Part shown: positions 2,674-40,886 of the stretch, piece by piece
How the letters are laid out: each line of letters opens with the position of its first letter
Numbering within the stretch: the first letter of the stretch is position 1
Sequence record: LR756500.1
Strand: one strand, 5' to 3'
DNA: 41,940 bases
The notes under the pieces: model-generated
What the model saw: only the letters and a program-made list of their open reading frames with translations
Database searches by the model: none
Told to the model about the DNA's origin: nothing
Translations under genes and position numbers: made by a program

Positions 2674-4314
2674 TTAGCTTTTTTTCCATTCAAATTTATA
2701 ATTTCCTGTTCCAAAACATCTATAACATCCTCTATCATGCATTATTTCCACTTCAGTCATCGAGGGATCTGCTCCTTCTTTAACCAATTTATCCTTTCTG
2801 AACTTAAACCTATTTTCTCGAATTCCATCTACCACCCACCAATAATTAAGTCCTGTATGCCCTATATATTTAAACCTTAATTTAGTATATAAATTATCTT
2901 GCTCATCAACCNNNNNNNNNNNNNNNNNNNNNNNNNNNNNNNNNNNNNNNNNNNNNNNNNNNNNNNNNNNNNNNNNNNNNNNNNNNNNNNNNNNNNNNNN
3001 NNNNNNNNNNNNNNNNNNNNNNNNNNNNNNNNNNNNNNNNNNNNNNNNNNNNNNNNNNNNNNNNNNNNNNNNNNNNNNNNNNNNNNNNNNNNNNNNNNNN
3101 NNNNNNNNNNNNNNNNNNNNNNNNNNNNNNNNNNNNNNNNNNNNNNNNNNNNNNNNNNNNNNNNNNNNNNNNNNNNNNNNNNNNNNNNNNNNNNNNNNNN
3201 NNNNNNNNNNNNNNNNNNNNNNNNNNNNNNNNNNNNNNNNNNNNNNNNNNNNNNNNNNNNNNNNNNNNNNNNNNNNNNNNNNNNNNNNNNNNNNNNNNNN
3301 NNNNNNNNNNNNNNNCACCAACTTAACTCCCTTTTCTTTAGCTAATGCTGTCTTATCTAAATGATAATCTTTAGGTTTATTGAATTCATTGTGCCAATAT
3401 ACTCCATTATGCTCAAAACCTAAATTATATAAAGGTATAAATATATCTATTTCATCTCCATTTAAAATAGTTCTATCTATTTTTGTTTCTATATTTAAAC
3501 TTTCTATAAATTCTCTAATTTCATTTTCTTTACCACTAGATCTATAACTATTTAATGGATTACAATTAAGACAAGGATTAATTGAATATACATTAATTCT
3601 TTGATGAAGTAAAAAAGAATTGATATTATAATTTTTATTACATTTATTACAAATAATATCTATAGTTCTATTTTTATTTATTTTAATTATATTTAAATGA
3701 TTATATTTGTTTTTAATATATGTTTCATATTTCTCAAATAATGTTTCTTTTCTTTTATCAGTTATTATTTTGTTTTGTTGTGGATGATTAACTCCATATA
3801 TTTTATTCCAAGTTTCTTTTCTATTTTTTAAAAAATCTTCAGTTTTAAATATACTATCTTTACCATATCGTTTAATATATGTTTCTTTTATTTTATTTTG
3901 AATTTTTTCATTTGATATAAAATTTTCACCATATTTTTCTTTTAATGTTTCTTTTCTTTTATTAATAAAATATTCACTTTGAAATAAATTTTCTGTTCCA
4001 TATTTTTCTTTTATTTTTTTATATCTATTATCTTTTACTAATTGATCATTTGCTGCACATTTTTTTGAACAATATCCAGTATAATTAAATTTATTTGGAT
4101 TAAATTTAGATTCTACTGAATTACATATTTTACAATTTGGAATTTTTAAAGTATTATTTAAAAAATGCCAAAGTTTACGAGAAAAATTAATATTTAATAA
4201 TTTCGTATATAAAATAATTTCTTGATATATTTCAGAAAAATTAATTTTTATTTTATATTCTGTTCTTTCTTTTCTAGAAAGTTTTAATATTTCTTTATTC
4301 ATTTTTCCATTCAA
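2674..4314 (-). CDS. Hef-like putative homing endonuclease, copy 2
   Basis: Same architecture: LWHFLNN..CKIC..YCSKKC, KYG repeats, FEHNGVYWH, C-terminus near-identical to copies 1, 4, 5. Likely start MNKE overlapping the stop of copy 3. N-run 2912-3315. Confidence 0.8.
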   Translation of the reverse strand: MNGKMNKEILKLSRKERTEYKIKINFSEIYQEIILYTKLLNINFSRKLWHFLNNTLKIPNCKICNSVESKFNPNKFNYTGYCSKKCAANDQLVKDNRYKKIKEKYGTENLFQSEYFINKRKETLKEKYGENFISNEKIQNKIKETYIKRYGKDSIFKTEDFLKNRKETWNKIYGVNHPQQNKIITDKRKETLFEKYETYIKNKYNHLNIIKINKNRTIDIICNKCNKNYNINSFLLHQRINVYSINPCLNCNPLNSYRSSGKENEIREFIESLNIETKIDRTILNGDEIDIFIPLYNLGFEHNGVYWHNEFNKPKDYHLDKTALAKEKGVKLVXXXXXXXXXXXXXXXXXXXXXXXXXXXXXXXXXXXXXXXXXXXXXXXXXXXXXXXXXXXXXXXXXXXXXXXXXXXXXXXXXXXXXXXXXXXXXXXXXXXXXXXXXXXXXXXXXXXXXXXXXXXXXXXXXXXXXXXVDEQDNLYTKLRFKYIGHTGLNYWWVVDGIRENRFKFRKDKLVKEGADPSMTEVEIMHDRGCYRCFGTGNYKFEWKKS

Positions 4315-6001
4315 ATTTTAATGAACCACTATCATATATTCTATAAATTTTTCTAGACATCATTATTTCATGTTCTGTCATATTAGAATCATAACCTTCT
4401 TTAACTAATACATCTTTCCTATAATTAAATCTATGTTTTTTAATTCCATCTACTACATACCAATAATTTGGAGGTGTATTATTTATAAAATTGAATCCTA
4501 ATTTATAATAAAGATTTCCTTTACTCCAACTCCTATCAGCATAACTAATTATTCTTATTGGATTATATTCTTTAATAAAATGTTTAAATAAGCGATCAGC
4601 ACCACCAATAACATTAGTATTTAAAATTGTACAGAATCTAAGTAATTCATACTCATTTTCAATTGAAATTTGTCCTAGTGCTTTTCTTAATACACTAAAT
4701 GTCATTAAACTAACTAATTCATTATTATAATATAGCCCATATTTTATTTTAGATGGAGTATATCCTTGTATGTGATTTTTTTCTAAGAAATCTTTTTCTT
4801 CTTTTGTATTAATTTCTTTTATATCACATTTTCTAGCATATATTTTATTATCAGATAAATTTAATATATTTTTTATTCTAGATTTAATTATATCTTTTTT
4901 ATAATACCAATCATCTTCATATATATGTATTAATTTTATATTATTATTTTCAGCTAATTCTGTTTTTTCTAAATGATAATCTTTATCCTTTTGGAGTTCA
5001 TTATGCCAATAAATTCCATTAAATTCAAATCCTATTTTTAAATCAGGTAAATATATATCTATTTCTTTACCATTTAAAAATATTCTTCTATTTAATTCTA
5101 ATGTATTATCATATATTTCACTTATAAATAATTTTAAACTATTTTCAGGTTTTGATAAATTTAATTGATTACAATTTGTGCATGTTTCCTCTTTATTATA
5201 TCTATATCTAAATAAATCTCTACTTATTTTATATGATTTTTTACAATTGTTGCACATAATAGTGAAAAAATCTCTTTCAATAAGAAGTATTTGTTTATCT
5301 GGATATGTTTTTATTATATTTTCTTTTCTTGTTTGTAGTATTTTATATTTAATATTTTCAACTTTATTTGGATTATCTTCTCCATATAGTTCTATCATTG
5401 TATTTTTAAATACATCTTTAACTATTTCCGATTGCCATGGATGATTAGTTCCATAACGTTCTTGGGATGTTTTTTTATATGACTCTTTCCAACTATCTAT
5501 ATTTTCTTTGAATGATTCTATTCTTTTTTCTTGTATCTCCTTTAATTGGGCTACATTTTCTACACCATAACGTTCTAAATTAGTATTCTTTAACTTATTT
5601 TGAATATCTTGTTTTTCTTCTTCGGATTTATTTAATTTAGTATTACTTAATTTATCTTTTATATTCTGTAATTTATTTGGATTATCAACTCCATAACGGT
5701 TTAGACTAGTTTTACGTCTAGATTCTTTCATTTTTTCCTTTAACTCTGGATCATTAACCATACATTCTTTTGAACAGTATCCTGTATATCCAATATCTAA
5801 ATTTTTAAAATTAGAATCTTTATTATTACATACTTTACACTTGGGAACTTCTTTTATTTTATATATGTAGTGCCATATTTTTTGTAAAAAACTGATATCT
5901 AAATCTAAATAACCATTTATCAATTCATACTTAATTGGATAATTTTTCTTTACACTGCGTTCTTGTAATAAATTTCCTTTTAATTCTATAATATTTTCCA
6001 T
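4295..6001 (-). CDS. Hef-like putative homing endonuclease, copy 3 (most divergent, fully visible)
   Basis: RYG repeats, EIDIYLPDLKIGFEFNGIYWH, NHIQG, YELLRFC, ISYADRSWSKGNLYYKLGF. Confidence 0.85.
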   Translation of the reverse strand: MENIIELKGNLLQERSVKKNYPIKYELINGYLDLDISFLQKIWHYIYKIKEVPKCKVCNNKDSNFKNLDIGYTGYCSKECMVNDPELKEKMKESRRKTSLNRYGVDNPNKLQNIKDKLSNTKLNKSEEEKQDIQNKLKNTNLERYGVENVAQLKEIQEKRIESFKENIDSWKESYKKTSQERYGTNHPWQSEIVKDVFKNTMIELYGEDNPNKVENIKYKILQTRKENIIKTYPDKQILLIERDFFTIMCNNCKKSYKISRDLFRYRYNKEETCTNCNQLNLSKPENSLKLFISEIYDNTLELNRRIFLNGKEIDIYLPDLKIGFEFNGIYWHNELQKDKDYHLEKTELAENNNIKLIHIYEDDWYYKKDIIKSRIKNILNLSDNKIYARKCDIKEINTKEEKDFLEKNHIQGYTPSKIKYGLYYNNELVSLMTFSVLRKALGQISIENEYELLRFCTILNTNVIGGADRLFKHFIKEYNPIRIISYADRSWSKGNLYYKLGFNFINNTPPNYWYVVDGIKKHRFNYRKDVLVKEGYDSNMTEHEIMMSRKIYRIYDSGSLKFEWKNE

Positions 6002-6145: not shown

Positions 6146-9100
6146 TTAGATAAACTCTCCAGTTGAAATAGCACCAGTCTTAAGAACAGTTGTTCTGTGA
6201 ACAAGAATTTCCAATCCCTTTACTGGTTCAACATATGTATCTAGTATACCTATATTTTTGTCTATTACATCAGGAGTATTATTTGTTTCATCCATAATGT
6301 TTCTAAAATCGTATACACCGTTATCTGCTTGAATTTGTCTCATAAAGTTATCAGCAAGTGTTTTAATTTCTAATCTAGTTTGTGCAGTATTAAATTCAAA
6401 AATAAAGTTTTTAAGAATTGCTGCAATACCATCTTGAATATAAATTAATACTTCTCTTACATGAATACTAGAAAGAGCAGACTTGATATTTTGTTGAGCT
6501 GTTTTATTACCAAAGATTACAATACCTGTACCGCTTTGGAAAATAATTGGGTTAAGTCCGAAAGGTTCAATCCAATCTCTATCTTCTTTAGATAAATTAT
6601 ATTCTAATCCAACTAAACCTCTTCCACCTACTACACCTCTTCTAGGACCTGCAACAATTGCCCAAGGTACTGAAGATGTATATTTTTCTACGAAGTTATT
6701 TGACACATAACCAGCAGGAGGAATAGCTAAATTTTTACCTCTATCTCTTACTAATACATAAGGAATATAAAAACCTGCATAATTTGATCCTTGTTCAACA
6801 CCTGGAAGAGTATATACTACTTTAGGATTTTTAGTTAAATCTCCACCTTCAGAAATCATTTTGGTATCAAGTAAACCTTGAGCATCTAAGAATGAAGGAT
6901 CTGTAGATTCTTTAAAATCTTTTATTGCTGGTGCATTAAGAATTGCAAATGCATTTTGTCTAGTTTTAGCTAAGTTACAAAGAACTGCTTTAGAACCTGA
7001 TTCAATACCTAATCCAAATGAATCAACAATATATCTAAAAGTTATATTATCTTTATCTATAAGAGCTTTATATAATTTTGTTCCAGATATAGTATCGTAT
7101 AAGATATTATTTTGTTGTTCCATAGAACCATCTGGTAAATGATAGCTAGTATAAGTAAATCCATTTAATGAAAATAAAGTATAATAATCAACCCAATCTC
7201 CAATTTTGCTATATACTTCAACTGAAGGAACAGCATTTACAGTTTTAAATAAAACTTTACCTACTGTTGTAACTGTTAATGTAGTAGCATTTTGTGAAAT
7301 TCTAACTATTCTAGTTAATCTAGAAGGACCTGTTGTACCACCATCATCGGCTACTATATATTTACCTACTGCTAATTTATTTGCATAATCAGAATGTACT
7401 TCAATAACATTACTTAATGATGTAGCAGTTGCAGGTATAGTTGAATTTAATGCTCCTTTTAAAGTTTGAATTACTAATGTATCTGTTGCAGCAGGAGTAT
7501 CAGTATTATCAAAAAATACTTCAGAGAAATTAAATGTTCCTTGAGTTACAAAACTTGAATCTTCGTATCCTTCAATTTTAGCAACTGGAATTAAATAATT
7601 TGTATCAGTAATAGCTCCACTTAAATATAAACCTCCATATACTATAGAATCAAATGTAGTTATAGTACTATCAATATATAATACTTCTGCAGCTTGTGGA
7701 TCTCCACTACCGTCTGCATCCCATATCATTTTATCTCCATCTGTAATTGTTCCTTGTTCAACGCTAGTATACATATCATTTGAATATGCTGCTATAATTG
7801 AATCAGCAGGTGCTGCAACTAAATCATCAACTAAAAAGTCAATATCTGTATAATTAACATATTTAAGATCATTTCCTGATAGAGCAGTATCAAATGATGT
7901 TTCAGTAATTCCTCCTACTACACTTACTTCAATTAATGCAGTTGTTGCAGTTACCTGTTTAGTAATAACTGGTACAAATTCTCCACTATCTGCTTGTAAA
8001 TAAGAACCTAATATTCTAGGAGATAATTCATTTTCTCTAAATTCTTCTTGTGCAACAATATTATAAAATGTTGCATTAGTTGAACTATCAACACTTATTA
8101 AAAGATTTCCAGATGATGCTAATACTGGATTTAATCCTGTACAATCATTTATAGCTTTTAATGTTACTGATTTCTTAGCATAATCTAAATTAGCTTTAAT
8201 TGTTTCTTTATAAGAAAGAAAATCTATTGTTGTAGGTTGTTCCCATTCTAAATTATGTCCAATTAAATCTAATCCACCATCTACTCCTGAAAGTAATTCA
8301 CCACTATCATATGCTTCTTTATTAATAGAACAAAATAATCCTGTTTTAGAAGTTTCTGTATTAATAATTGTTTCAATGAATAGATTATTACTATTTAAAT
8401 CAATAAAATCTGGAATTAAACATCCTGTATAAGTTGCAATATGATTTACTTCTGGTAAATTTAAGAATGCTTCAAGAGATGTATCAGTCGAATCTGCTAC
8501 TGATACTTTTCTTTTTATACCTCTAGATTTATCAAAATAACTAGCAAATAAAGGATCTGATGCTAATCTTTCATATGGAGTTGTATCAGTTGATTTAGGA
8601 CCAAAATCTCCTTCAATAACTATTACATCAATCATAAAATCTGATATATAATCATCTTTGTGTAAAAACTCAGGTATATTAGATATACCATACCATTCTT
8701 TAACAGTAATATCAAAACCACTTATAAAATCTGCTCTTTTAACAATTACAGTTAAAGGCTTTTTATCGATATTTGTTAAATTAAATAATTTATTTCCAGA
8801 TGAAGTAACATTTTTAATAAATGCTTCTGTATCAGGAAACCAAAATTTATCTCTATTGAAAAATCCTGCAAATAAATCTGATGATTTTGTATCATTAATT
8901 TGTGTTGCACTAGTTGAAAATACAACATCTTCAATTTTATCAGCATTTCCTTCTGAATCGTCATTATTTAATCTTAATAAATTAAGAGCTAAAATTGGAC
9001 CTCTTTCTAAAGCAGCTAAACATGTTCTGTGAAAATAAGAACCTTTTCTTTCTAAAGTTCTATCTATACTTCCATATACATCGCTAAAAAAGCCAGTATC

Positions 9101-9256
9101 TGATACATAAATAGGCGTATTGAAAGGGCCTTTCTTACTAAATCCAACGATCATTCTAATTTGCTCAGCAGGTATAGAAACTGTTTGAGATTTATCAAAC
9201 TCAAATCTATAGGTGCCGGAACTACGAAGCGATGCAATTTGTGGTGATATTGCCAT
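6146..9256 (-). CDS. Tail sheath protein (T4 gp18-like), 1036 aa
   Basis: N-terminal GTYRFEFDKS..IVGFSKKGPFNTP; C-terminal AGPRRG, GNKTAQ..SALSSIHVREVL, FIFEFN..TR, DETNNTPDVID. Confidence 0.95.
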   Translation of the reverse strand: MAISPQIASLRSSGTYRFEFDKSQTVSIPAEQIRMIVGFSKKGPFNTPIYVSDTGFFSDVYGSIDRTLERKGSYFHRTCLAALERGPILALNLLRLNNDDSEGNADKIEDVVFSTSATQINDTKSSDLFAGFFNRDKFWFPDTEAFIKNVTSSGNKLFNLTNIDKKPLTVIVKRADFISGFDITVKEWYGISNIPEFLHKDDYISDFMIDVIVIEGDFGPKSTDTTPYERLASDPLFASYFDKSRGIKRKVSVADSTDTSLEAFLNLPEVNHIATYTGCLIPDFIDLNSNNLFIETIINTETSKTGLFCSINKEAYDSGELLSGVDGGLDLIGHNLEWEQPTTIDFLSYKETIKANLDYAKKSVTLKAINDCTGLNPVLASSGNLLISVDSSTNATFYNIVAQEEFRENELSPRILGSYLQADSGEFVPVITKQVTATTALIEVSVVGGITETSFDTALSGNDLKYVNYTDIDFLVDDLVAAPADSIIAAYSNDMYTSVEQGTITDGDKMIWDADGSGDPQAAEVLYIDSTITTFDSIVYGGLYLSGAITDTNYLIPVAKIEGYEDSSFVTQGTFNFSEVFFDNTDTPAATDTLVIQTLKGALNSTIPATATSLSNVIEVHSDYANKLAVGKYIVADDGGTTGPSRLTRIVRISQNATTLTVTTVGKVLFKTVNAVPSVEVYSKIGDWVDYYTLFSLNGFTYTSYHLPDGSMEQQNNILYDTISGTKLYKALIDKDNITFRYIVDSFGLGIESGSKAVLCNLAKTRQNAFAILNAPAIKDFKESTDPSFLDAQGLLDTKMISEGGDLTKNPKVVYTLPGVEQGSNYAGFYIPYVLVRDRGKNLAIPPAGYVSNNFVEKYTSSVPWAIVAGPRRGVVGGRGLVGLEYNLSKEDRDWIEPFGLNPIIFQSGTGIVIFGNKTAQQNIKSALSSIHVREVLIYIQDGIAAILKNFIFEFNTAQTRLEIKTLADNFMRQIQADNGVYDFRNIMDETNNTPDVIDKNIGILDTYVEPVKGLEILVHRTTVLKTGAISTGEFI

Positions 9257-9280
9257 AATTTTTAATTTTTTTTATTTTTA

Positions 9281-9289
9281 TTATATATC
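9281..9289 (-). promoter_or_regulatory. Late-promoter-like motif GATATATAA (tail sheath)
   Basis: Upstream of sheath ATG. Confidence 0.65.
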
Positions 9290-9330
9290 ATCAACAAACT
9301 TTAAAAATTAAAAATTATAGAAATAATTTA

Positions 9331-11178
9331 TTAATTTGTATTAATGTAATTAAATTTTAAATTACCTGTTCCAAAACATCTATAATATCCTTTATCATGC
9401 ATTATCTCCACTTCAGTCATTGATGGATCCGCTCCTTCTTTAACCAATTTATCCTTTCTGAACTTAAACCTATTTTCTCTTATGCCATCTACTACCCACC
9501 AATAACTAAGCTCTGAATGCCCTATATATTTAAAACCTAATTTTATATACAAATTATCTTGCTCATTTGATGTCCAATCACAATCAGTATAACTAATTAC
9601 TTGTTCTGGTTTGTATTCCTTTGTAAAATAATTAAACAAACGACTTGCACCTCCTGTAACAGATATATTCAATTTATTAGCAAACCTTAAAAGTTCATAT
9701 TCTCCTTCAACTGCCTTTTGTCCTAAATTCTTTCTTAATGATCCTAACGTCATTAATGATACTAATTCATTNNNNNNNNNNNNNNNNNNNNNAACAGCAG
9801 CATTAACATTACCTTGCAAATGGTTCCTATTTAAAAACTCTCGACTATCACTAGAGGACACCTCTTTAATTATACACTTTCTAGCATATATAGTTTCATT
9901 TAAATTTAATAGCCCTTTTATTCTTGACTTAATAATATCTTTTTTATAATTCCAATCATCTTCCCAAATATGCACCAACTTAACTCCTTTAGATTTAGCT
10001 AATAATGTTTTATTTAAATGATATTTATCATCTTTATATAATTCGGAATGCCAATAGACACCATCTACTTCAAATCCTACTTTATAATCTTCTATATAAA
10101 TATCTATTTCATTATCATTTAAAATGGTTCGATCTTTTTTTGTTTCTATATTTAAACTTTCTATAAATTCTCTAATTTCATTTTCTATTTTACTTTCAAA
10201 AGAATTTGAATAATATAAAGGTTCACAATTTAAACATGTATTTTTATTTATTAATGATCTTTTATGAAGTAAATAGCTTGTTATAGTATATTCTTTATTA
10301 CATTTATCGCATGTTATAGTAACATTTAAATTATTATCAATATTAATAATATTTAGAGTATTAAATTTATTTAAAATATCATTTTTATATTTATTTTTTA
10401 ATTTTGATTTATAAAAATTAGATTGAGTTATAAATTCAGTTNNNNNNNNNNNNNNNNNNNNNNCTTTTGATTTTTCTTTTATTTGTTCTGATTGTAATAC
10501 ATGATTAGTACCATATTTTTCTAAGCATGTTAATTCTCTTTTTTCTAAACTTTCTTTTGTTACATTATGAAACTGATTATATCTTTTAAAATTAGTTTCT
10601 TTTATTTTTTGTTTAATTTCATTATTTCTAAATACATTATCACTTCCATATTTTTCAGTTAAAGTTTTTATAGATTTTTGTTTAATTTTTATATTATCAA
10701 AAACATATTCAACTCCATAANNNNNNNNNNNNNNNNNNNNNNNNNNNNNNCTTATCTTTTTAACAGATAATATTTCTTCATTACCATATTTTTCTAAACA
10801 TGTTGATTTTCTTTTTTCTATTGCTAATTTACTTTGACTTGGATTTATTGTTCCATATCTTTCTAATGAAGTTTTTCTAATTTTATTTATAGATAATTGT
10901 TTTGAACATTCATTTGAACATGATGTATAACCAATAGAAATAGATCTAAATTTTTTTAAATTATTTTTACATATTTCACATATAGGTATTTCACATATAT
11001 CATTTAAATATAAATAAAGAATTTCTTTAAATTGTATTTTAGTAAAATTATATTTTGTAATAAAAATATTTAAATCATTTAAAATTTCTGGTTCAAATTT
11101 TTCGAACCATTTTTTATTCATTCTAGTTGATAAAAAACGATTATTTATTTTTATTATATGCAGTAATTTATTTTTCAT
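9331..11178 (-). CDS. Hef-like putative homing endonuclease, copy 4
   Basis: CEICK..CSNEC, multiple KYG repeats, FEVDGVYWH, NHLQG, YELLRFA, ISYTD..LYIKLGF. Confidence 0.85.
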   Translation of the reverse strand: MKNKLLHIIKINNRFLSTRMNKKWFEKFEPEILNDLNIFITKYNFTKIQFKEILYLYLNDICEIPICEICKNNLKKFRSISIGYTSCSNECSKQLSINKIRKTSLERYGTINPSQSKLAIEKRKSTCLEKYGNEEILSVKKIXXXXXXXXXXXYGVEYVFDNIKIKQKSIKTLTEKYGSDNVFRNNEIKQKIKETNFKRYNQFHNVTKESLEKRELTCLEKYGTNHVLQSEQIKEKSKXXXXXXXXTEFITQSNFYKSKLKNKYKNDILNKFNTLNIINIDNNLNVTITCDKCNKEYTITSYLLHKRSLINKNTCLNCEPLYYSNSFESKIENEIREFIESLNIETKKDRTILNDNEIDIYIEDYKVGFEVDGVYWHSELYKDDKYHLNKTLLAKSKGVKLVHIWEDDWNYKKDIIKSRIKGLLNLNETIYARKCIIKEVSSSDSREFLNRNHLQGNVNAAVXXXXXXXNELVSLMTLGSLRKNLGQKAVEGEYELLRFANKLNISVTGGASRLFNYFTKEYKPEQVISYTDCDWTSNEQDNLYIKLGFKYIGHSELSYWWVVDGIRENRFKFRKDKLVKEGADPSMTEVEIMHDKGYYRCFGTGNLKFNYINTN

Positions 11179-11271: not shown

Positions 11272-12084
11272 TTAAATTTTAAAATATTTATCTTTTATTT
11301 TAAATGATAAATTATATTCATGCATAAAGTTTTCTTCACCTATATTTTTTATAGTATCTTCTTTCCATTTTTCATTTCTTTGTGGATGATCATACCAATA
11401 AACTTTTTTAACTTTAAATATTTCAGAATCTTGTACAAATTTATAAAATAAATCAAAATGAATATCTGAAGACATAATAATTATTCTAGAATTATTAATT
11501 GAAGCATATAATGGTACTATTTCTTTTATTAAAATTTTTTTATTATTATCAGACATGTTAGAAATATTATCAATTATAAAAATATCATAAAGTTTACCTT
11601 TATAATTATTACTATTTACTAATTGTATACTTGAATTATTATCGAATTCTATTACTTCTGATGTGCTTTTTATAATACCTGGTTTCAAATACATAGGTAA
11701 TTTAGAATAAAAAATTTTAAATTTATTAAATAATTCTCTACCAATTTCATGTTTAATTGAAAATAAAGCTATTTTTTTTTGTTCAAATACTGCAAAATAT
11801 AAAGATAATAATGTATTTAACATTGAAATTCCCATTTGTCTAGAACTTAATAATATTGAAAATCTATTTTCATTCCAAAATTTTAAAATATCTTTTTGAT
11901 ATTCATATAAATTAATATCCAATTTTGATATAAAATATTCAATATCTTTTCTACATTTATAATATTCATCTAATTCATCATAATCTAAAACATATTTAAA
12001 TTTACTATTTTTACTATTAGGTATATTTCTATAACAATATTCATTGCTATTTATACTATTTTTATTTATATAATTCATAACCAT
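11272..12084 (-). CDS. Terminase large-subunit ATPase-domain paralogue with degenerate motifs
   Basis: YKCRKDIEYF, LYEYQ (Q motif), SRQMGIS (Walker A without Lys), FIIDNIS (Walker B DE>DN), YSKLPMYLKPG, VYWYDHPQR; no nuclease domain. Confidence 0.8.
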   Translation of the reverse strand: MVMNYINKNSINSNEYCYRNIPNSKNSKFKYVLDYDELDEYYKCRKDIEYFISKLDINLYEYQKDILKFWNENRFSILLSSRQMGISMLNTLLSLYFAVFEQKKIALFSIKHEIGRELFNKFKIFYSKLPMYLKPGIIKSTSEVIEFDNNSSIQLVNSNNYKGKLYDIFIIDNISNMSDNNKKILIKEIVPLYASINNSRIIIMSSDIHFDLFYKFVQDSEIFKVKKVYWYDHPQRNEKWKEDTIKNIGEENFMHEYNLSFKIKDKYFKI

Positions 12085-12087
12085 TTT

Positions 12088-12099
12088 TATTTATATATT
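12088..12099 (-). promoter_or_regulatory. AATATATAAATA (contains T4 late consensus TATAAATA), terminase paralogue
   Basis: Directly upstream of ATG 12084. Confidence 0.65.
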
Positions 12100-12154
12100 A
12101 ACAATAGAGTCAGAAAAAATTTAAAAATTAATTTTTTCTGACTCTATTGTTAAT
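12097..12154. terminator. 25-bp perfect inverted repeat, 8-nt loop, after TerL-C
   Basis: ATTAACAATAGAGTCAGAAAAAATT (12097-12121) and its exact complement (12130-12154). Confidence 0.8.
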
Positions 12155-12175: not shown

Positions 12176-14062
12176 TTAAATAATATCATAAATATCGAAA
12201 AATAAACTACCATCTTCTCCTTTAGATCCCTTATTTAATTCTTTATCAACTAAATCTTGAATATCTTTTTCTATTATTTCATATAATTCTTCTGCAAAAT
12301 CTGAGAAATCCATAGTAGAAAAGAATTCATTACTGGTTATGCAAGACATTATTAAATCATCGTGTCCCTTCATTCCAGCATAGGATCCAGCTGGAGTTTT
12401 TCCAAATTGTTTAGCTTCTTCTATTGTATTAAATTCAAATAATTGTATTCTATTTTCTCTAATTGATTTTTTAAATTTTTGACATATTATAGGTTTATTA
12501 TCAGTTTTAATTCTTAATCCAAAACTAGGAGTCTTTGCGTCATTTCTATGTTTAAATTTTACTATCATTTCTTCATCAAATTCATTTCTAGATGGAAAAA
12601 TAGTTTGTAAATTTTTAATTAATTCACCACCAAAAGTATTCCATTCTATTATTATTTTTATATTTTCTGCATAAAAAATATCAAAAATTAAAGTATATAA
12701 TATTTTAGCATATTGTTCAGGAGAATGTTCATTACTTCTAAATACTCCTATTTGTTTTAAAGCAAAAAAGTCCATAAAAGAGCCAGGCTGTTTTAGATGT
12801 TTAAACATATCTTTATCTAATAATTCTAGTTTAAAGATATTTATTACAGCATGATCTCCAAAATTACCAGCAGATAAATCACAACTAAATAACCAATAAT
12901 TTTCTTCATTACCTATTTCATCAATATCAAATTTTGGATGCCATTTCAAAAATATTTCATAAGGTATTTCTAAATCTTCTAATTCATCAAATTGATGTGA
13001 TATAAATTCTACTTTTGCATTTTCTAATTTTTTAAGTTCTCCTGGACCTAAAAGTAAATTATCTCCTGATATAAATTGATTACCATATTGTCTATTAAAT
13101 GCATCTTCACCACCTAAATTAGAAATTTCTTTTCTCATCCATTCATTATCTCTTCCTGGAACCTCCCACCAATCAACTCTAAAATCTTTAAATTCATTTT
13201 GTTTTCTAACAGCTCCATCATAAATATCATGAAACTTATTAAATCCATTTGGTGTACTAGTAATAATAATTCTAGATATTTGTGAAGACGATAATGTAGG
13301 AAATACATTTTCATAAAAACTATGTACAAAATTAGGATGTATGTGAGCAAACTCATCTAAAAATAAAAGGTGAATAGTAAAACCTATACCTGCTTTTTTA
13401 GTAGTAGATTGAGCAACAATCCTACAGCCATTATCAAATTTTAAATTAAATACATCATTTTTTAATAATCCTGGTTTCATAAAAAATGGTAAATTATCTA
13501 ATATAACTTTTGCTTTATCTACAATTTCTCTCGTCGTGGCACCTTTATTCGATAAAATTAAACAATTCTTATCAAAATTAAATAATACGTACCATGCTAT
13601 ATAAATTGACGAACATATTGTTTGACTTGAAAGTATACCATTAGTATATAATCTATGATTTGGATGATTTACTGTAACATCAAACATACCTATTTTATTG
13701 TTACTTTTTGATATACTAATAATTTTTTCTAAACCATCGACTGTTATTATTTCCGTATTTAATTCAAGTTTATCGAAAGATATTTTATTATAATTTTTAT
13801 CATAAACTTTATGTAAATCAGCGCCTTCTAAAATTTTACCTGACTCTGTTATTATTGTCCATACTTTATAAGGTTGAGTATTATGAAGATATTGTAATTC
13901 TTCATATCCAGTATCAGTTAAAACTTGTATATATGATAACTTAATAGATTTAATTATTTTTTTAGATATATTATTTTCATCTAAATCTAAATTTCTATAC
14001 TGTATTTTTTCTATTAATTCTATTAAGTATAAAATTATTTTTTTTAATATTTTTTTTATCAT
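12176..14062 (-). CDS. terL: Terminase large subunit, C-terminal part, preceded by split-intein IntC (aa 1-147)
   Basis: Intein blocks EGADLH, MFDVTV..HRLYTNGILSSQ|T, then TICSSIYIAW, Walker B LFLDEFAH, STPNG, nuclease motifs CDLSAG..GD and HDDLIM. Confidence 0.92.
   Translation of the reverse strand: MIKKILKKIILYLIELIEKIQYRNLDLDENNISKKIIKSIKLSYIQVLTDTGYEELQYLHNTQPYKVWTIITESGKILEGADLHKVYDKNYNKISFDKLELNTEIITVDGLEKIISISKSNNKIGMFDVTVNHPNHRLYTNGILSSQTICSSIYIAWYVLFNFDKNCLILSNKGATTREIVDKAKVILDNLPFFMKPGLLKNDVFNLKFDNGCRIVAQSTTKKAGIGFTIHLLFLDEFAHIHPNFVHSFYENVFPTLSSSQISRIIITSTPNGFNKFHDIYDGAVRKQNEFKDFRVDWWEVPGRDNEWMRKEISNLGGEDAFNRQYGNQFISGDNLLLGPGELKKLENAKVEFISHQFDELEDLEIPYEIFLKWHPKFDIDEIGNEENYWLFSCDLSAGNFGDHAVINIFKLELLDKDMFKHLKQPGSFMDFFALKQIGVFRSNEHSPEQYAKILYTLIFDIFYAENIKIIIEWNTFGGELIKNLQTIFPSRNEFDEEMIVKFKHRNDAKTPSFGLRIKTDNKPIICQKFKKSIRENRIQLFEFNTIEEAKQFGKTPAGSYAGMKGHDDLIMSCITSNEFFSTMDFSDFAEELYEIIEKDIQDLVDKELNKGSKGEDGSLFFDIYDII
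13622..14062 (-). mobile_element. Split intein C-fragment (147 aa, atypically long, ends Ser-Gln; +1 Thr)
   Basis: Block B-, F- and G-like motifs; junction codons TCA AGT CAA|ACA. Confidence 0.8.
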
Positions 14063-15162
14063 TATTTATTTTTATTTTCTATAAATTCTAAGCAATTATT
14101 TATTACTAAATCAGGATCTTTATAATATTCTAATTCATTTACATGATATACTTCATATCCTGATCTTAATATTGCATCATCTCTATCTTTTTCTCTTTTA
14201 TTATTTTCGGGATTATTTTTATGATAATATACACCATCAAATTCTATAATTTTATTTATATCTTTTATAAAAAAATCTGGTAAAATTATTCTATTACATA
14301 ATCTTAATCTATATTCTGAATTAGTACCATCATCTAAAATAATTTTATTTTTATTTAAAGTTGCAAAATATATCTCATTATATTTATCTTTTATAATTTC
14401 ATATAAAGAAATAAAAAGTTTCTGTGATACTTTAGAATAACTACTTACTTTAAAATTATTACTCCATCTATTTATTTTTAAATTCCATTTTTCTATACCT
14501 ATTTCTTCTCCATATTTATTTATAAAAAAATTTAAATCTCTACACTGAATTTTAGAAATAATATTTTTTGCTTCTTCTAAAGAAAAACCTCTTCGTATCC
14601 AATATTCTTTATGTATAGGCATAACTCTATTTTTCATAAAATACTTATAATTATCTTTTTTCATAATAAAATATTCTTCATCTGTTAAATTAGGATATCT
14701 CTTTTTATAAAACTCAATAGAAAATGGACTAGTCTCTTTACGTTTTTGCTCAGTAGTTTTACTTTTAGACATAATGTTTCCTTCACCTTTCATTCTATCA
14801 GAAATCCATTTTCTCCATTTATCTTCTTTCATATGTTTACCTCCATTTATAGTTGTTGCCGCTTTATCACTAGGTATACATAATAATGCATCTACACCAA
14901 AATCTTTTCTATAATCACTATTATTTTTATCGGGATGAAATCTTTTGAAATGACCACTATATATTCTTTTAACAGCCATTCCACAATATTTACATATAAC
15001 ATAATCTGTATTTTCTATACTGTTTAATTTTAATTTTTCCGATTCTTTATAAGCACCATAAATACCTTTACATTTATTTGAACAAAATTTAGCACTTATA
15101 GTAGAAGAGTTAAATTCATTTTTACAATGAATGCATTTTATTTTTCTAATTATATTTGACAT
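14062..15162 (-). CDS. Free-standing Vsr/DUF559-like endonuclease between the terL halves
   Basis: Zn motifs CIHC..FCSNKC and CKYC..HFKRFH, KYGEE repeat, LPDFF..IIEFDGVYYH; own TATAAATA promoter; TAATG overlap with TerL-C. Confidence 0.85.
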   Translation of the reverse strand: MSNIIRKIKCIHCKNEFNSSTISAKFCSNKCKGIYGAYKESEKLKLNSIENTDYVICKYCGMAVKRIYSGHFKRFHPDKNNSDYRKDFGVDALLCIPSDKAATTINGGKHMKEDKWRKWISDRMKGEGNIMSKSKTTEQKRKETSPFSIEFYKKRYPNLTDEEYFIMKKDNYKYFMKNRVMPIHKEYWIRRGFSLEEAKNIISKIQCRDLNFFINKYGEEIGIEKWNLKINRWSNNFKVSSYSKVSQKLFISLYEIIKDKYNEIYFATLNKNKIILDDGTNSEYRLRLCNRIILPDFFIKDINKIIEFDGVYYHKNNPENNKREKDRDDAILRSGYEVYHVNELEYYKDPDLVINNCLEFIENKNK

Positions 15163-15166
15163 TTTT

Positions 15167-15178
15167 TATTTATATATT
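15167..15178 (-). promoter_or_regulatory. AATATATAAATA, endonuclease/TerL-C
   Basis: Directly upstream of ATG 15162. Confidence 0.7.
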
Positions 15179-15188
15179 AGATATAGTA

Positions 15189-15764
15189 CTAGCTTCTTGA
15201 TAGATAAGAATATGTTTTATATAAATAATATTTAATTTTATCTAAAAAAGATAATGTTTTATTTGTTTTAGATATAACATAATATAATTCAAATATAGGA
15301 AGTGTATAAGTATTATCTTTATTTTTAAATTTACTTAAACTATTAATTAAAGTAATATCATTTAACTTTATAGTAATTAATATATTATGGAAAAAACATT
15401 TCCCCGTTTGTCTCGCCGCGAGGCAGATACTGAAGCGATTATCAACAAAATGTCTAAGCATTTTTTCTTGATAATCTCTTAATACAATTGTTCTAAGACC
15501 TTCATCGGTCATTACTGTACAATACTTATTAGCAAAATATACTATATCTTTAGCACATTTTCTTATTTCACTTATTTCAAAATCTGTATAATCAAATATT
15601 ATGTTACCTTTTCTTATTGTTGGATTGCCTTCATAAAAGGGAGTTGATTTGGGTTTATAACCTTCATCAATCATATTCATTAATTCATTGATTTTTTCGG
15701 TACTCCATGCTGTTCTTTCTTGCACATTATCTTCTTTATGTGCTAGCGCGTATTCTTCTTCCAT
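15189..15764 (-). CDS. terL: Terminase large subunit, N-terminal part (aa 1-122) + split-intein IntN (aa 123-191)
   Basis: KCAKDIVYFANKYC, LRDYQ, Walker A AARQTGK directly followed by Cys1 (CFFHNILI..LPIFELY). Confidence 0.92.
   Translation of the reverse strand: MEEEYALAHKEDNVQERTAWSTEKINELMNMIDEGYKPKSTPFYEGNPTIRKGNIIFDYTDFEISEIRKCAKDIVYFANKYCTVMTDEGLRTIVLRDYQEKMLRHFVDNRFSICLAARQTGKCFFHNILITIKLNDITLINSLSKFKNKDNTYTLPIFELYYVISKTNKTLSFLDKIKYYLYKTYSYLSRS
15192..15398 (-). mobile_element. Split intein N-fragment of terL (69 aa)
   Basis: Cys after GK; block A-like; no block B, which is in the other half. Confidence 0.75.
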
Positions 15765-17471: not shown

Positions 17472-17480
17472 TTAGTTATT
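17439..17480. repeat. 42-bp direct repeat, copy B
   Basis: Spans the last two codons and stop of terS and first 11 codons of the LRR gene. Confidence 0.95.
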
Positions 17481-18239
17481 ATCATTTTCAAAATCTTCAG
17501 GATCTGGTCCAAAATCCTCTTCATCATCTACATCTAAATCTTCATCTAAATCAATCACAGGTTCAATAGTTTCAGCATTTTGATAATTTTTAGTAATTAA
17601 ATCTTCTTGAGTTATTGATTCTTCTTGATCAATTATTTCTTCTTTTTTAAGACTTTGCTGTATAGCTTTCATTAAATCTTTTTGTCCTCTTGAACTGACG
17701 CCTGATTTGTTAGTAGCTTCTTTACTATTAGATGTTGTAGATTTTCCTTTGTATACTTCATAATCTCTTCCTATTCTTTTAATATCTTCTTCAGCAGCCA
17801 TCATATACATAGTTTGACTTTTAATAATATCAAGCATTGTCTTTTGAAGTTGACCTAATACCTCAAACATTCTTGGATGCATATCTCCATCTTCTATTGC
17901 TTCTAATAATCTTGTCATAGATCGTTCAGAAGTTTCTAATAAATAAATTAATTTTGAAAGACCTGAATTTTTAGCTTCTATTTTAGCTTTAATATATTCT
18001 TCATGTTCAATTATATCTTCATCTAAATAGAATTTTAGTAATGAAATAATTGTATTACGAGCTCTATCTTCTGCCTTATCTTTTATTGTTTTAAATATTG
18101 TACCAGACATTTTAACTGAAGGAAGAGCATCATCGGCCTTTTCATTAGTATTAATTTCATCAGGAAGACCGTCTATTATTAAATCACTTATAGACATTCT
18201 TACGAATTCCTTATCATCTTCACTTATTTTATCGTTCAT
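17472..18239 (-). CDS. terS: Probable terminase small subunit (T4 gp16-like)
   Basis: HPRMFEVLGQLQKTMLD resembles the gp16-family HPRxxEVxxQL motif; acidic tail; upstream of terL. Confidence 0.7.
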   Translation of the reverse strand: MNDKISEDDKEFVRMSISDLIIDGLPDEINTNEKADDALPSVKMSGTIFKTIKDKAEDRARNTIISLLKFYLDEDIIEHEEYIKAKIEAKNSGLSKLIYLLETSERSMTRLLEAIEDGDMHPRMFEVLGQLQKTMLDIIKSQTMYMMAAEEDIKRIGRDYEVYKGKSTTSNSKEATNKSGVSSRGQKDLMKAIQQSLKKEEIIDQEESITQEDLITKNYQNAETIEPVIDLDEDLDVDDEEDFGPDPEDFENDNN

Positions 18240-18257
18240 TATTTATAATATTAAAAA

Positions 18258-26075: not shown

Positions 26076-26837
26076 TTATACATTATTAACTACGTTTTGA
26101 ATCTCATAAATCGCGGCCAATAGTGAAATCTGTGGATCAATTACCTGTTGACGAGTAGATTGATATTTATTTACAGTTATAATAATTTGTGGAAGATATT
26201 TTAATTTATCAGGTTTTTCTTGTTGTAAATATTCAATAAATTCTGTACCTAAAGATGCTAATACATCATCAACTCTATTAGAATAATTAGAAACTAAATA
26301 TTGATAATTTTTAACAGGATCTATATTATCGAAAATTAATTGAAATATATCTTTATAAACGCTATTAAATTTTTTAATATCATCTATTGATATTTTTTCT
26401 TTACCTTCATTTTTATATCCTTGTAAAGTATTTAGCATACTTCTAAAGTCAGGAAATTTTCTTTTAACTAATTCTAATAATGCTTCTTTATCTATAATTA
26501 AATTTTCAGCTTTACATATATTCCACAATCTAATTAAATAACCTTTCATTAATTCAGATTCTTCTTCTTTAGAAAAATCAAAATTAATTAATTCAAATCT
26601 AGATTTAACTGCTTCATCTATTTTATTAATATAATTACTAGTAGCAATAAATCTAGAATTAGCATGAAATTCTTCCATAGATGCTTTAAATGCTTTAAAA
26701 AATTGCTGTGAAGCACCATCACAATTATGAGTACATATTCCATTTTCTGTTAAAAATGTATGATTTTTATATACTGTTAAATTTAAAACTCTTCCTTTAT
26801 CTATTTTTTTAATTTGTTTTATTTTAAATGTTTTCAT
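26076..26837 (-). CDS. Clamp loader (gp44/RFC-like) C-terminal part, preceded by split-intein IntC (aa 1-38)
   Basis: MKTFKIKQIKK..NLTV..NHTFLTENGICTHN|CDGAS, then RFIATSN..KIDEAVKSRF, FPDFRS. Confidence 0.92.
   Translation of the reverse strand: MKTFKIKQIKKIDKGRVLNLTVYKNHTFLTENGICTHNCDGASQQFFKAFKASMEEFHANSRFIATSNYINKIDEAVKSRFELINFDFSKEEESELMKGYLIRLWNICKAENLIIDKEALLELVKRKFPDFRSMLNTLQGYKNEGKEKISIDDIKKFNSVYKDIFQLIFDNIDPVKNYQYLVSNYSNRVDDVLASLGTEFIEYLQQEKPDKLKYLPQIIITVNKYQSTRQQVIDPQISLLAAIYEIQNVVNNV
26724..26837 (-). mobile_element. Split intein C-fragment (38 aa, His-Asn end, +1 Cys)
   Basis: Canonical block F/G, Lys-rich. Confidence 0.9.
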
Positions 26838-28155
26838 TTATTAAAAAATTTTTGATTTTATTATTTACTTTTTCTGGAATTTTAAAATTATTTTTTTTAA
26901 CAATATTATCGAAATGTATATATGTATAATTTTTAAAAAAAAATTCATCAATTCTTTTATATGTAAAAAAATTTAAGTTACACCAATAAATTAAACTTTC
27001 TTCTTTTAAAATATTAATATCTTTATTCATATAAATTGATGGTTTTATTTCATATACAACTTTATTTTTATAATCTATAAAATCTATTATATAAATTTTT
27101 TCAATATTATTATAAGTATAAGGTATTCTTAAATCTTCATATTTTAAATCTAAATTTTCATTTAAAATAAAAAAACATAATTCCCAAGAACTTCTAAATT
27201 TATACTCAATATTATTGTGTCTTAAATAAATATCTAATTTTGTCCAATAATTATTAATATTAGGTTTAAATCTATTTTCTGATATAGCCTTCTTAAGAGC
27301 AATACTTTGTTTTTTCCTTCTTTCATCGGTAACATAAAATTTAAAATTTTTATGATAACATTTTAATGAACAGGTATATTGTGATTTTGTTTTTCCTTTT
27401 CCAAATAATTGTTTATATTCATATTCTTTATCACATATTTTACATATTTTAATATTTTCATGATAATATGTTTTTACAAAATCTAAAAATTTATCTTTAT
27501 ATAGTTTTTTATAAAAAAATCTTTTATTTCTTAAATTCTTTTTAATATAAAAACAAGTATCCTCACTTAAATAATAATCTTTTAAATCAATTTTCTTTTT
27601 ATTATAAAAATAATTTAATCTAAAATCATTAAACATATTAATGGGATTTTCAACTTTGTTTAATATGAAATTTTTATATAAAATATGTTTTACCTTTTTA
27701 ATATCTTTATATTCATTTAATAATTTATAACTTATTAAATTTAAATATGAATAATCATAAGGTTGAAAATTATCAATTATATGTTCATTTTTAAAAAAAT
27801 ATCTTTTATATTTTTGACAATAATCATCATTACATTTATAAATTCTTCTATTTTTTAAATCTTTAATCTTTATATTATTATTACATATTTTACATTTTAC
27901 AATCTTTTCATCATTTTTTTCCTTTTTTAATTTATTACGTTTTTTTGCACATTCTATTAAAAATGTTTTTTGACATTTTTCATTACAACATATTTCTTTA
28001 TATCCTGTAAAAAAACCTCTAAATTTTGCATTAGATCCACAATATTTACACTTAGGTATATTTATATTATTTTCTTTTAAATATGCTTCTTCAATAGAAG
28101 CATATTTAAATCTAAATTTATTAATTAAACTTCTATTATAACTACTATAACCCAT
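26824..28155 (-). CDS. Free-standing TnsA-like PD-(D/E)xK endonuclease between the clamp-loader halves
   Basis: Several CxxC Zn motifs, FRSSWE..IPY..YIIDFID..YEIKP; own TATAAATA promoter. Confidence 0.8.
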   Translation of the reverse strand: MGYSSYNRSLINKFRFKYASIEEAYLKENNINIPKCKYCGSNAKFRGFFTGYKEICCNEKCQKTFLIECAKKRNKLKKEKNDEKIVKCKICNNNIKIKDLKNRRIYKCNDDYCQKYKRYFFKNEHIIDNFQPYDYSYLNLISYKLLNEYKDIKKVKHILYKNFILNKVENPINMFNDFRLNYFYNKKKIDLKDYYLSEDTCFYIKKNLRNKRFFYKKLYKDKFLDFVKTYYHENIKICKICDKEYEYKQLFGKGKTKSQYTCSLKCYHKNFKFYVTDERRKKQSIALKKAISENRFKPNINNYWTKLDIYLRHNNIEYKFRSSWELCFFILNENLDLKYEDLRIPYTYNNIEKIYIIDFIDYKNKVVYEIKPSIYMNKDINILKEESLIYWCNLNFFTYKRIDEFFFKNYTYIHFDNIVKKNNFKIPEKVNNKIKNFLINENI

Positions 28156-28164
28156 TAATATTTT

Positions 28165-28176
28165 TATTTATATATC
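28165..28176 (-). promoter_or_regulatory. GATATATAAATA, TnsA-like endonuclease
   Basis: Upstream of ATG 28155. Confidence 0.7.
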
Positions 28177-28194
28177 CCATTATATTTTTAAATG

Positions 28195-28821
28195 TTATAA
28201 AAAACATATTATATTATCCGTCAAACTTAGTCCATTTTTTATAGATTTTTCCATAATTTTACTATCCTTTGTGAGAATCATAAAGGGATGATTCTCAGTA
28301 ACATTGATAGTTTTTCCATCTTCTAATTCTATTTCATATAAATCATCAATTTTATCAGAAATTATTTCACATGTATCATTTTCTAATTTTCCAGTTTCAG
28401 TATTCATAGAAATACAATCATATATAGTATTTTTTTCTAAATTTTTTAATTTTATAGATTTCCAATTATTAAGTTTACCTATTCTTACCTTTTCATCTTC
28501 TTGTAAACATTCGTCTAGAATAACAACTTTAAGTTTTCCAGGTTCATCCATTATTGATCTAGTAGAACAAAAATCTGTTATTTTTTCTCTAACAACATCT
28601 ACTGATGTTTCTTTAGATGAATTAATATAAATATATGGATATCCAAATTCTTTAACAATAGCTTTAGCAACAGAAGTTTTACCTAAACCCGGACTTCCAT
28701 AAAATAAATAATTTTGAAGTTGACCAGATTTGAATTTTTCCTTTAAAAAATTTGGAACTACTATGTCATCTATTTTTGTTGGACGATATTTTTCTGTCCA
28801 TAATATTTCAGATATCTTCAT
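28195..28821 (-). CDS. Clamp loader (gp44/RFC-like) N-terminal part (aa 1-104) + split-intein IntN (aa 105-208)
   Basis: LWTEKYRP, Walker A GSPGLGKT, Walker B VILDE|C, intein block B VTENHPF. Confidence 0.92.
   Translation of the reverse strand: MKISEILWTEKYRPTKIDDIVVPNFLKEKFKSGQLQNYLFYGSPGLGKTSVAKAIVKEFGYPYIYINSSKETSVDVVREKITDFCSTRSIMDEPGKLKVVILDECLQEDEKVRIGKLNNWKSIKLKNLEKNTIYDCISMNTETGKLENDTCEIISDKIDDLYEIELEDGKTINVTENHPFMILTKDSKIMEKSIKNGLSLTDNIICFL
28198..28509 (-). mobile_element. Split intein N-fragment of clamp loader (104 aa)
   Basis: CLQEDEKV block A, LYEIELEDGKTINVTENHPF block B. Confidence 0.9.
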
Positions 28822-39668: not shown

Positions 39669-40886
39669 TATAAAATTAAAACTCTCAAACTTAAAATAAA
39701 AAACCTTTCTAAACCTAACTATTCTAAACTTCTAGAACAATGCAACCACTCAAGAGCCCTTTACAACTCGGCTCTCTATATAGCAAATGAACATTATAAA
39801 CAAACTCTTTCCTACATCGGCTACAACGACCTCTATAAAGAACTTAAAGACAACATCCATTATAACTCACTTAACAAACCGACTGCTCAACAAATCATTA
39901 AACTTGTAGACAAAAACTTTAAATCGTTTTTTGCTCTACTTAAAAAGAAAAAATCAAACTCATCTATAGGACAAATTAATTCACCTCAATATAAAAAGTC
40001 TGATTCATTATTTAATTTGATTAAGCCGATTCAGAAAGAGAGTAATTCGATAAGAAAGGGATTTTTAAATATTTATAATTGGCTTAAGATACCATATACA
40101 CATGAAATAGACGGAAACATTAAGCAATTTACAATCAAACCTATAAACAATGGTCAGTTTTTTTATTTGTATATTGTTTATGAAGAAAATAAAAAAGAAG
40201 AAGTAAAAATAAATAAAAATAGATACTTAAGTATAGATTTAGGCATTAATAATTTGATGGCTACATTTGATTCAACTGGACGTTCAATAATAATAAACGG
40301 TAAACCTCTTAAAGCATATAACAGTTGGTTCAACATAAAGAAATCAAGTATTCAGTCAGAGCTAGAAATAAAAAATAAAAAGAAATGGAGTAAAAGATTA
40401 CAGAATTTAAATGAAGATAGAAAGAATTTTATAAATAATTATTTTAATCAATCAGTAAATAGAATAGTTAAGCATTGTATAGTTAATGATATTGGAACAG
40501 TAATTGTTGGATATAATAAGAAATGGAAGCAGGATACTAAAGAGTTAGGTAAAAAATTTAATCGTAAATTCCAACAAATTCCGCATTTTATATTGAAGGA
40601 AAAGTTGAGTAATAAATGTAGTGATTATGGAATAGATTTGGTATTTCATGAAGAGAGTTATACTAGTAAGTGTGATGCATTAGCGATAGAGAAGTTAAAG
40701 AAGCAAGATGTTTATTTAGGTAAAAGGATAAAAAGAGGATTGTTCCAGTCAAGTGTAGGAAAGTTGATAAATGCTGATGTGAATGGAGCGATGAATATAA
40801 TGAGAAAAGTAGTCAGTGATTCCCAGTTTAAAGGGATAGTTGATAATAGGTTAATAGTACAACCTTTAATGATTAACATCTTATAA
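39669..40886 (+). mobile_element. tnpB: IS200/IS605-family TnpB RNA-guided nuclease (solo, no tnpA); frame open from 39669, ORF track shows only 40017-40886
   Basis: RuvC-I SIDLGINNL, RuvC-II EESYTSK, RuvC-III NADVNGAMNI; upstream same-frame residues ..CNHSRALYNSALY..AQQIIKLVDKNFKSFF are typical TnpB N-terminus. Confidence 0.92.

Follow-up and report, generated by a model that had tools for sequence, protein, structure and literature searches.

A lysine-less paralogue of the terminase ATPase domain beside a split terL gene represents an apparently undescribed family of large and huge T4-like phages

The minus-strand reading frame at positions 11272–12084 of the DNA studied here (41,940 nt of LR756500.1, from an uncultured 462-kb phage; the whole stretch is called the window below) encodes a stand-alone protein of 270 residues, P0001, that is confidently predicted to adopt the complete ATPase fold of the large terminase subunit (TerL) without the residues required for hydrolysis and without a nuclease domain. 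Its relatives make up an old, widespread and so far apparently undescribed family of dead paralogues of the TerL ATPase in large and huge T4-like phages, in which the lysine of the P-loop is almost always missing. We favor the reading, with a probability of about 0.45, that P0001 is a noncatalytic mimic of TerL that binds the partners of TerL and has an accessory or regulatory function in DNA packaging, as its pattern of conserved residues would suggest; the probability beyond this reading and the four rivals weighed below is assigned to none of them.

Results

An Intact Frame with Lost Catalytic Motifs

The sequencing runs containing the stretch come from groundwater and soil metagenomes, with no RNA runs among them, and the DNA is AT-rich, the G+C content being 16–30% in the window and 17% in the frame of P0001. 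On the minus strand, the genes run in the order of a candidate small terminase subunit (TerS), two unknown genes, the N piece of terL, a 366-aa frame, the C piece of terL, P0001, a homing endonuclease and the tail sheath. The TerS candidate (17472–18239), two genes upstream of terL, has a weak match to phrog_735 (E = 2.6e-4), and the two terL pieces, P0002 (15189–15764) and P0003 (12176–14062), were recognized by BLASTP and PHROG. The free-standing frame between them (14062–15162) is probably a homing endonuclease, judging by its motifs and position, its PHROG match being weak. The gene of P0001 lies downstream of the C piece across a spacer of 92 nt and is directly followed by the homing endonuclease (9331–11178; phrog_3339, E = 2.4e-112), a gene with masked N stretches, and then by the tail sheath (6146–9256; assigned by PHROG); the portal gene is outside the window. 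Three other samples yielded short contigs identical to the window, with zero variants, and the genome record G001 is from the same phage, begins inside terL and lacks the paralogue gene, providing no independent copy. In the public gene call, P0004, the protein starts at the second Met and has 268 residues.

With a stop probability of 0.115 per codon from the local base frequencies, a stop is expected at about every ninth codon at 17% G+C, and a frame of 270 open codons (P ~5e-15) is thus not open by chance. None of 20,000 shuffles of the sequence was free of stops, and there are 23 and 61 stops in the two alternative forward frames. The protein is recognizably derived from TerL: its best PHROG match is phrog_5989, "terminase large subunit" (E = 2.9e-29), and BLASTP aligns it with the N piece of the neighboring terL at 36% identity over 74 aa (E = 6e-10) and with the C piece at 28% over 166 aa (E = 3e-11). 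The adenine-binding YQ motif is retained, with the codon of Q63 at 11896–11898 (minus strand, as are the motifs below), and this Gln is invariant in the 49-member family alignment A1, present in 99% of 85 lysine-less proteins and in 100% of TerLs. According to the alignment, the Walker A motif is degenerate, reading SRQMGIS (residues 81–87; 11824–11844) with Ile86 in the place of the P-loop lysine; the Walker B motif reads IFIIDN (residues 168–173; 11566–11583), D172 being kept and the catalytic Glu replaced by Asn173; and the coupling (C) motif (I)TSTPNG has given way to MSSDIH (residues 204–209; 11458–11475). As S-x-P-N-G is present in most family members, the last of these losses is particular to P0001. 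The protein ends at the hinge that precedes the nuclease domain, at about gp17 residue 357, and no nuclease homology was found downstream of the gene, where the homing endonuclease and the tail sheath follow.

P0001 has the predicted ATPase fold of a functional TerL but not its Walker A, Walker B and C motifs or its RNase H-like nuclease, and the frameshifts, stops and lost family-conserved positions that would mark a pseudogene were not found. The original prediction, made from the letters of the DNA, had described an intact frame, the motif losses (as GIS, DN and SSDIH) and the absence of a nuclease domain, and on all these points it was right.

The Predicted Fold and the Question of a Decoy

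A comparison of the predicted structure with the gp17 ATPase had been proposed as a check, and it recovered the full domain. The AF2 model of P0001, built on the alignment A1, has a pLDDT of 95.1 and a pTM of 0.91, and its top PDB matches in Foldseek are structures of the ATPase domain of T4 gp17, 2o0j (E = 1.4e-18, TMq 0.85, rmsd 2.2) and 2o0h. The family profile aligns to gp17 residues 78–357 (E = 2e-57), and thereby covers the N-terminal domain completely, as far as the hinge.

At rank 5 of the fold matches (TMq 0.67) stands 8dgc, the complex of Avs3 and TerL. This match touches on the proposal of the original prediction that P0001 is retained as an antidefense decoy, soaking up the Avs-type sensors of TerL: Avs3 binds TerL, and a protein like P0001 would present a TerL-like surface without the enzymatic risk. 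In the complex, however, Avs3 reportedly contacts the ATPase active site and the nuclease domain, and P0001 lacks the active-site residues of the former and the latter in its entirety. Binding of the ligand is also said to activate Avs proteins via oligomerization, which would make a binder more likely to set off the defense than to block it, and we see no obvious route by which a partial ligand would block. With the PADLOC scan giving no match either, the decoy is unsupported by our analyses, and we consider it highly improbable.

A Family of Lysine-Less Proteins

An exhaustive HMMER search with P0001 across 1.84 billion cluster representatives produced 2837 matches, the best 150 of which were analyzed; the top of the list is made up of dozens of stand-alone proteins with 260–320 residues. 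Among these 150, 77 proteins are at most 345 aa long, and the Walker A lysine is missing from 70 of them, the position being taken by I (17), M (14), F (10), S (7), L (6), V (5), T (4), Y (3), N (2) or R (2). The turn around it, S-R-Q-x-G, is well kept in the 77 short proteins (Arg in 69, Gln in 66, Gly in 73 and Ser/Thr in 57). Of the proteins of at least 480 aa in the same set, 61/62 have G-K-[ST], Asp-Glu and S-T-P-x-G, and the lysine is missing from one. The stand-alone relatives of P0001 have 254–330 residues and consist of the ATPase domain only; P0001 itself, a separate protein of 270 aa with the S-R-Q-x-G turn and Ile86, falls in the clade of lysine-less proteins described below. For each family member tried, the best PHROG is phrog_5989 (1e-30 to 1e-49), and the Pfam assignment, where on record, is Terminase_6N. 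One relative, P0012 (612 aa, from a JGI contig of 2.4 kb), is made of two lysine-less domains in tandem, with the P-loops SRQTGIS and SRETGLT.

We found no name and no curated family for these proteins, NCBIfam holding no model, and our literature searches turned up no account of TerL paralogues that lack the lysine; the paper introducing these huge phages, when searched for "intein" and "paralog", gave zero occurrences of either term. Scans with NCBIfam, PADLOC, Rfam and for tRNAs revealed nothing relevant. A word-based protein search with P0001 matched only P0001 itself and the N piece of one split TerL. In IMG/VR, the 80 loci retrieved with the subset A2 were all true TerLs, P0008 likewise found true TerLs only, and P0010 gave one useful locus, L103. 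The family appears to be absent from cultured phages: among the tblastn matches listed for P0001 and P0010 (40 each), all those outside the uncultured LR7565xx records fall on genes with a large-terminase annotation. Three of these regions were inspected and contain full-length terminase genes or, in phiM12, one in two parts, and a second TerL-like place exists in only ~15 of the 2559 records with a match.

What the Family Has Lost and Kept

For 35 alignment columns that are at least 85% conserved in 77 TerLs, we compared the residues with those of 85 lysine-less proteins, counting the consensus as lost if the top residue had changed or had fallen to about half. Eight columns were lost: those of the lysine in Walker A, of the Asp in Walker B, of the catalytic Glu with the Ala that follows, of the coupling Thr, and of one Phe, one Gly and one further Ala; the other 27 are conserved in the family at similar frequency. 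In the column of the Walker A lysine, all of the 77 TerLs have K, and the commonest residue among the 85 family members is I, at 25%. Among the 85, retention of the Arg, the Gln and the Gly in the P-loop is 87–95% for each residue and that of the Pro of LPFFLKPG is 100%, and the Trp-Pro-Arg-Trp positions of subdomain II (W-x-x-P-G-R-D-x-x-W) are also kept. Of the 41 best-conserved columns of the family, P0001 retains 34, ranking 20th of 85, and its only extra loss beyond the family pattern is that of the C motif.

Loss of the catalytic residues combined with conservation of the fold and surfaces is the signature of a pseudoenzyme under purifying selection rather than of decay. The ratio dN/dS, which had been suggested for a comparison across relatives, agrees where it could be computed, being 0.22 for one pair of relatives 98% identical, a value that rests on 6 synonymous and 6 nonsynonymous changes; the remaining pairs are too divergent.

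Phylogeny and Location of the Relatives

The phylogeny was inferred by maximum likelihood (LG+G4, fast search, SH-aLRT) from 165 sequences aligned to the family HMM. Of the 87 lysine-less proteins, 85 form a single clade (SH-aLRT 96.6) with only one lysine-bearing member inside, and the sister of this clade (89.2) consists of the TerLs found in LR756501, in L103 and in four further large contigs. On this tree, the lysine-less family is shown to descend from one duplication of a TerL ATPase domain. Within the family, the nearest companions of P0001 are P0007 and P0052, whereas the TerL encoded in the window branches one node outside the lysine-less clade and the sister TerLs combined; as P0001 is part of the old clade and its neighboring TerL falls further out, it is an old paralogue that is merely located beside terL. 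The original claim of a terminase paralogue next to terL thus holds insofar as P0001 is a retained, dead, ATPase-only relative of TerL, for which the large family and the selective losses speak, but not in its suggestion of a local duplicate of the fractured gene, which the tree contradicts. The branch lengths of the family are about twice those of the sister TerLs (1.42 vs. 0.73), with P0001 at 1.70.

A separate observation concerns P0009 (302 aa; L235, 6001–6909), a stand-alone, ATPase-only protein that has intact SRQTGKT, LDEF and STPNG motifs and lies inside the lysine-less clade, its gene being surrounded by small unknown genes. Its position could mean either that the lysine was lost several times or that it was regained by reversion.

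The family genes are complete stand-alone reading frames in many unrelated contigs, some as long as 186, 462 and 735 kb, and at ten other loci of the gene, no TerL nuclease domain was found within flanks of ~2–10 kb. For most members, terL is not adjacent. In the window, the paralogue lies directly downstream of a split terL, and in L103 (IMG/VR, 50 kb), it lies directly upstream of the N piece of a terL that is likewise split; these two copies, both abutting terL, fall in different subclades of the family. In LR756501 (735 kb), where the pieces of the split terL are ~12 kb apart, the paralogue is flanked by an epimerase and a Nudix gene at a distance of ~90 kb from terL and keeps Asp-Glu and S-G-P-N-G. 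The terL genes of LR756504 and LR756502 are unsplit; the former phage has a short and much more degenerate paralogue, and the latter has none at E ≤ 1e-5, from which it follows that the protein is dispensable in some relatives. The idea that the paralogue is always paired with a split terL was rejected on the same two genomes.

The order epimerase, paralogue, Nudix is found both in LR756501 (L001, 3813–7673) and in L172 (2196–6390). In L017, L160 and L162 (~8800–10900), the epimerase is a divergently oriented neighbor, and genes for an NTP-transferase, a HAD protein and a DNA methylase are nearby. The copy in L193 (308–1233) is in two frames of 97 and 222 aa, which may reflect a frameshift or an assembly error, and in the copy in LR756504.1 (635706–636363), the frame is open but the YQ motif is gone and little of the P-loop remains (NSEGTDMI); both are possibly decaying relatives.

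Such copies bring up the explanation that P0001, too, is a decaying relic, a partial duplicate of terL that arose by endonuclease-driven recombination and is open by luck. Its gene does have terL on one side and a homing endonuclease on the other, in a region rich in endonuclease genes, its G+C content is very low, and with the C motif, it has lost more than most of its relatives. The affinity with the old clade rather than with the adjacent terL, the ~5e-15 chance of an open frame, the 34 of 41 family-conserved positions kept and the confidently predicted fold nevertheless all run against this account, and we regard it as largely refuted, the least probable of the alternatives.

The Neighboring Split terL

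The terL gene beside P0001 (12176–15764, minus strand) is broken by a split intein in the P-loop, in the arrangement ARQTGK/C...intein...SSQ/T. The N piece starts with an N-extein of residues 1–122, ending in ARQTGK (15399–15764), and continues with a 69-aa N-terminal intein part of which the first residue is Cys. In the C piece, residues 1–147 form the C-terminal intein part (13622–14062), and residues 148–628 provide the rest of TerL from the Walker A Thr onward (12176–13621). The same layout of the C piece is found in LR756501 and L103, with the intein inserted at the same site and ending in HN/T in L103 and in LN/T in LR756501, where the window has Gln. Independent confirmation of the junction comes from an 85-nt contig (depth 20.9) of the source sample, which joins position 13621 to 15399, exactly the predicted extein junction, and skips the 1777 nt that comprise both intein parts and the endonuclease frame. 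A contig without the intein indicates that the sample contains either an intein-less allele of terL or a close relative with an unsplit gene; given the five mismatches in 49 nt, the contig is probably from a relative. In LR756501.1, the pieces are found at ~609.2–611.5 kb and 623.9–624.3 kb (L011, L013) with unrelated genes between them, and a radical-SAM-like gene is directly upstream of the C piece; at a distance of ~12 kb, the mature TerL must arise by trans-splicing.

Five copies or fragments of phrog_3339 homing endonucleases are wedged among conserved structural genes (93–1997, 2674–4314, 4295–6001, 9331–11178 and 41065–41940, all on the minus strand), and at least five more copies, at 72–80% identity, exist elsewhere in the genome. 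The clamp-loader gene also seems fractured (26076–28821, minus strand): its N part (28195–28821) covers phrog_168 positions 7–117 and has an intein-like tail, its C part (26076–26837) covers positions 110–309, and an endonuclease frame (26824–28155) separates the two. A transposase gene (40017–40886; phrog_506, E = 6e-35) lies on the opposite, plus strand at a local flip of the GC skew.

The Spacer Upstream of P0001

The original prediction had given the gene a promoter of its own on the basis of the octamer TATAAATA. A sequence scan does place this octamer at 12088–12095 (minus strand), 3 nt upstream of the ATG, a distance so short that transcription from a T4-type late start would begin inside or after the start codon. 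Moreover, the octamer is common, occurring 42 times in the window against an expectation of 28.9 ± 5.6, a mild excess in AT-rich DNA, and the promoter itself is thus weakly backed. The same octamer is found 0–9 nt upstream of three other start codons on the minus strand (15167–15174, 18240–18247 and 28165–28172), in each case too near for a T4-type late promoter. It may be part of an A/T-rich translation start region or be associated with leaderless transcripts.

The 92-nt spacer further contains a perfect inverted repeat of 25 bp with an 8-nt loop (12097–12154); no other perfect hairpin in the window is as long. A run of T comes after it on the plus strand only, and there is no U-run on the coding strand. 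In this phage, P0001 would probably be expressed with terL or just after it.

Discussion

With the ATPase residues and the nuclease gone, P0001 would neither drive translocation nor cut DNA and would act by binding. Since all features of TerL other than catalysis are kept, the simplest targets would be TerL's own partners, and a mimic of the N-terminal domain could occupy the sites by which TerL meets adjacent subunits of its own kind, the portal or TerS. The C-terminal segment, which is strongly conserved in the family, is the equivalent of gp17 subdomain II, which has reportedly been modeled against the portal in the T4 motor. The adjacency to terL in two different subclades, those of the window and L103, speaks for a link to packaging, and the tandem fusion P0012 offers a hint of an oligomeric mode of action. 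A regulator or dummy subunit of the motor, the other suggestion of the original prediction, is plausible in that it would fit the conserved features of the sequences. Our complex prediction for the TerL N-extein and C-extein with P0001 scored 0.00 and speaks neither for nor against binding. A role as a substitute for the small terminase was considered less likely, a weak TerS candidate being present at 17472–18239.

Most family members are not next to terL, and the neighbors of several raise another interpretation, since the epimerase and Nudix genes could point to a role outside packaging. In that case, the dead fold would have been kept to bind a ligand or to serve as a scaffold, for example in a sensor of nucleotides or nucleotide sugars tied to genes for the modification of DNA or surface sugars. 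The retention of the adenine-binding Gln and of the P-loop Arg, Gln and Gly implies that a nucleotide-like ligand may still bind, and the paralogue is flanked by the epimerase and Nudix genes in LR756501 and L172 and faces a divergent epimerase in L017, L160 and L162. Loss of the P-loop lysine, on the other hand, usually abolishes nucleotide binding, and the synteny was observed in two sets of related phages, where common ancestry may account for it. The copies of the window and L103 abut terL instead, and a pure ligand sensor would have no need for the TerL-like subdomain II and surface motifs that the family has kept. We find such a role unlikely, although it is the most credible of the rivals to an accessory function in packaging.

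Still less probable, in our view, is that P0001 is a weapon between phages, a dominant-negative mimic of TerL that poisons the portal or motor of coinfecting relatives and spares that of its own phage. The many homing endonucleases in the genome are a sign of frequent coinfection and conflict, the family has about twice the evolutionary rate of the sister TerLs and is patchily present among relatives, and a dead subunit that could still dock would be a classic dominant-negative design. Against this, long vertical retention and conserved synteny fit a housekeeping function better, and the T4 motor tolerates some inactive subunits, so the poisoning may be weak. PMC8589836 describes that motor as a flexibly coordinated pentamer.

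The accessory or regulatory function in packaging that we favor can be taken one step further. The dead paralogue may be an unrecognized extra component of the terminase in large and huge T4-like phages, docking on the portal or in the TerL ring and controlling the timing or mode of the motor, which would then be a heteromeric machine; in this specific form, the idea is rather doubtful. Conserved dead paralogues of a TerL domain would provide a handle on the regulation and assembly of the motor in the largest phages, and the family would be a clean viral example of a pseudoenzyme, making the finding of interest for research on packaging motors and huge phages alike. There is a practical side as well: as the proteins score as "terminase large subunit" (PHROG 5989, Terminase_6N), they can be mistaken for TerL in annotation, in TerL phylogenies of huge phages and in marker-gene surveys, and they are recognized by the joint absence of the P-loop lysine and the nuclease domain.

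Among known systems, the split gene next to P0001 has a counterpart in a terminase gene that is fractured by a split intein and accompanied by a free-standing endonuclease, a rare terminase case (Dassa et al. 2009, PMC2677866). The layout is shared with the window, with the intein in the P-loop (GK/T) and an endonuclease-like frame between the pieces; an unusual length of the C-terminal intein part is common to both, 147 aa in the window vs. 122 aa there. The gene of that report is a split terL, whereas P0001 is an intein-free paralogue, and the passages on "terminase" and "gp17" do not mention a dead paralogue. The closest structural relative is the N-terminal ATPase domain of T4 gp17 (Terminase_6N; 2O0H, 2O0J, 3CPE), which has the same fold with subdomains I and II. 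The family shares with gp17-type TerLs the YQ, S-R-Q-x-G, LPxFLxPG and PNG motifs and the end motif F-x-Q-E-Y/H; P0001 differs from gp17 in lacking the Walker A lysine, the catalytic Glu, the coupling motif and the nuclease and in being the product of a separate gene with its own clade. The PHROG 5989 profile (347 positions) carries a name that implies an active terminase, and P0001 is dead; as the true TerL N piece also has this profile as its best match, the profile cannot separate the dead paralogues from TerL ATPase domains.

Viral packaging motors have been described as rings of identical TerL subunits. Elsewhere, proteins that bind without hydrolyzing and regulate or scaffold a motor are well known, such as F1 alpha, the clamp-loader and Rad51 paralogues and, in herpesviruses, pUL28 and pUL33. 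For the lysine-less family, these offer an analogy only, and the accessory terminase subunits of herpesviruses, unlike the proteins described here, are not paralogues of TerL.
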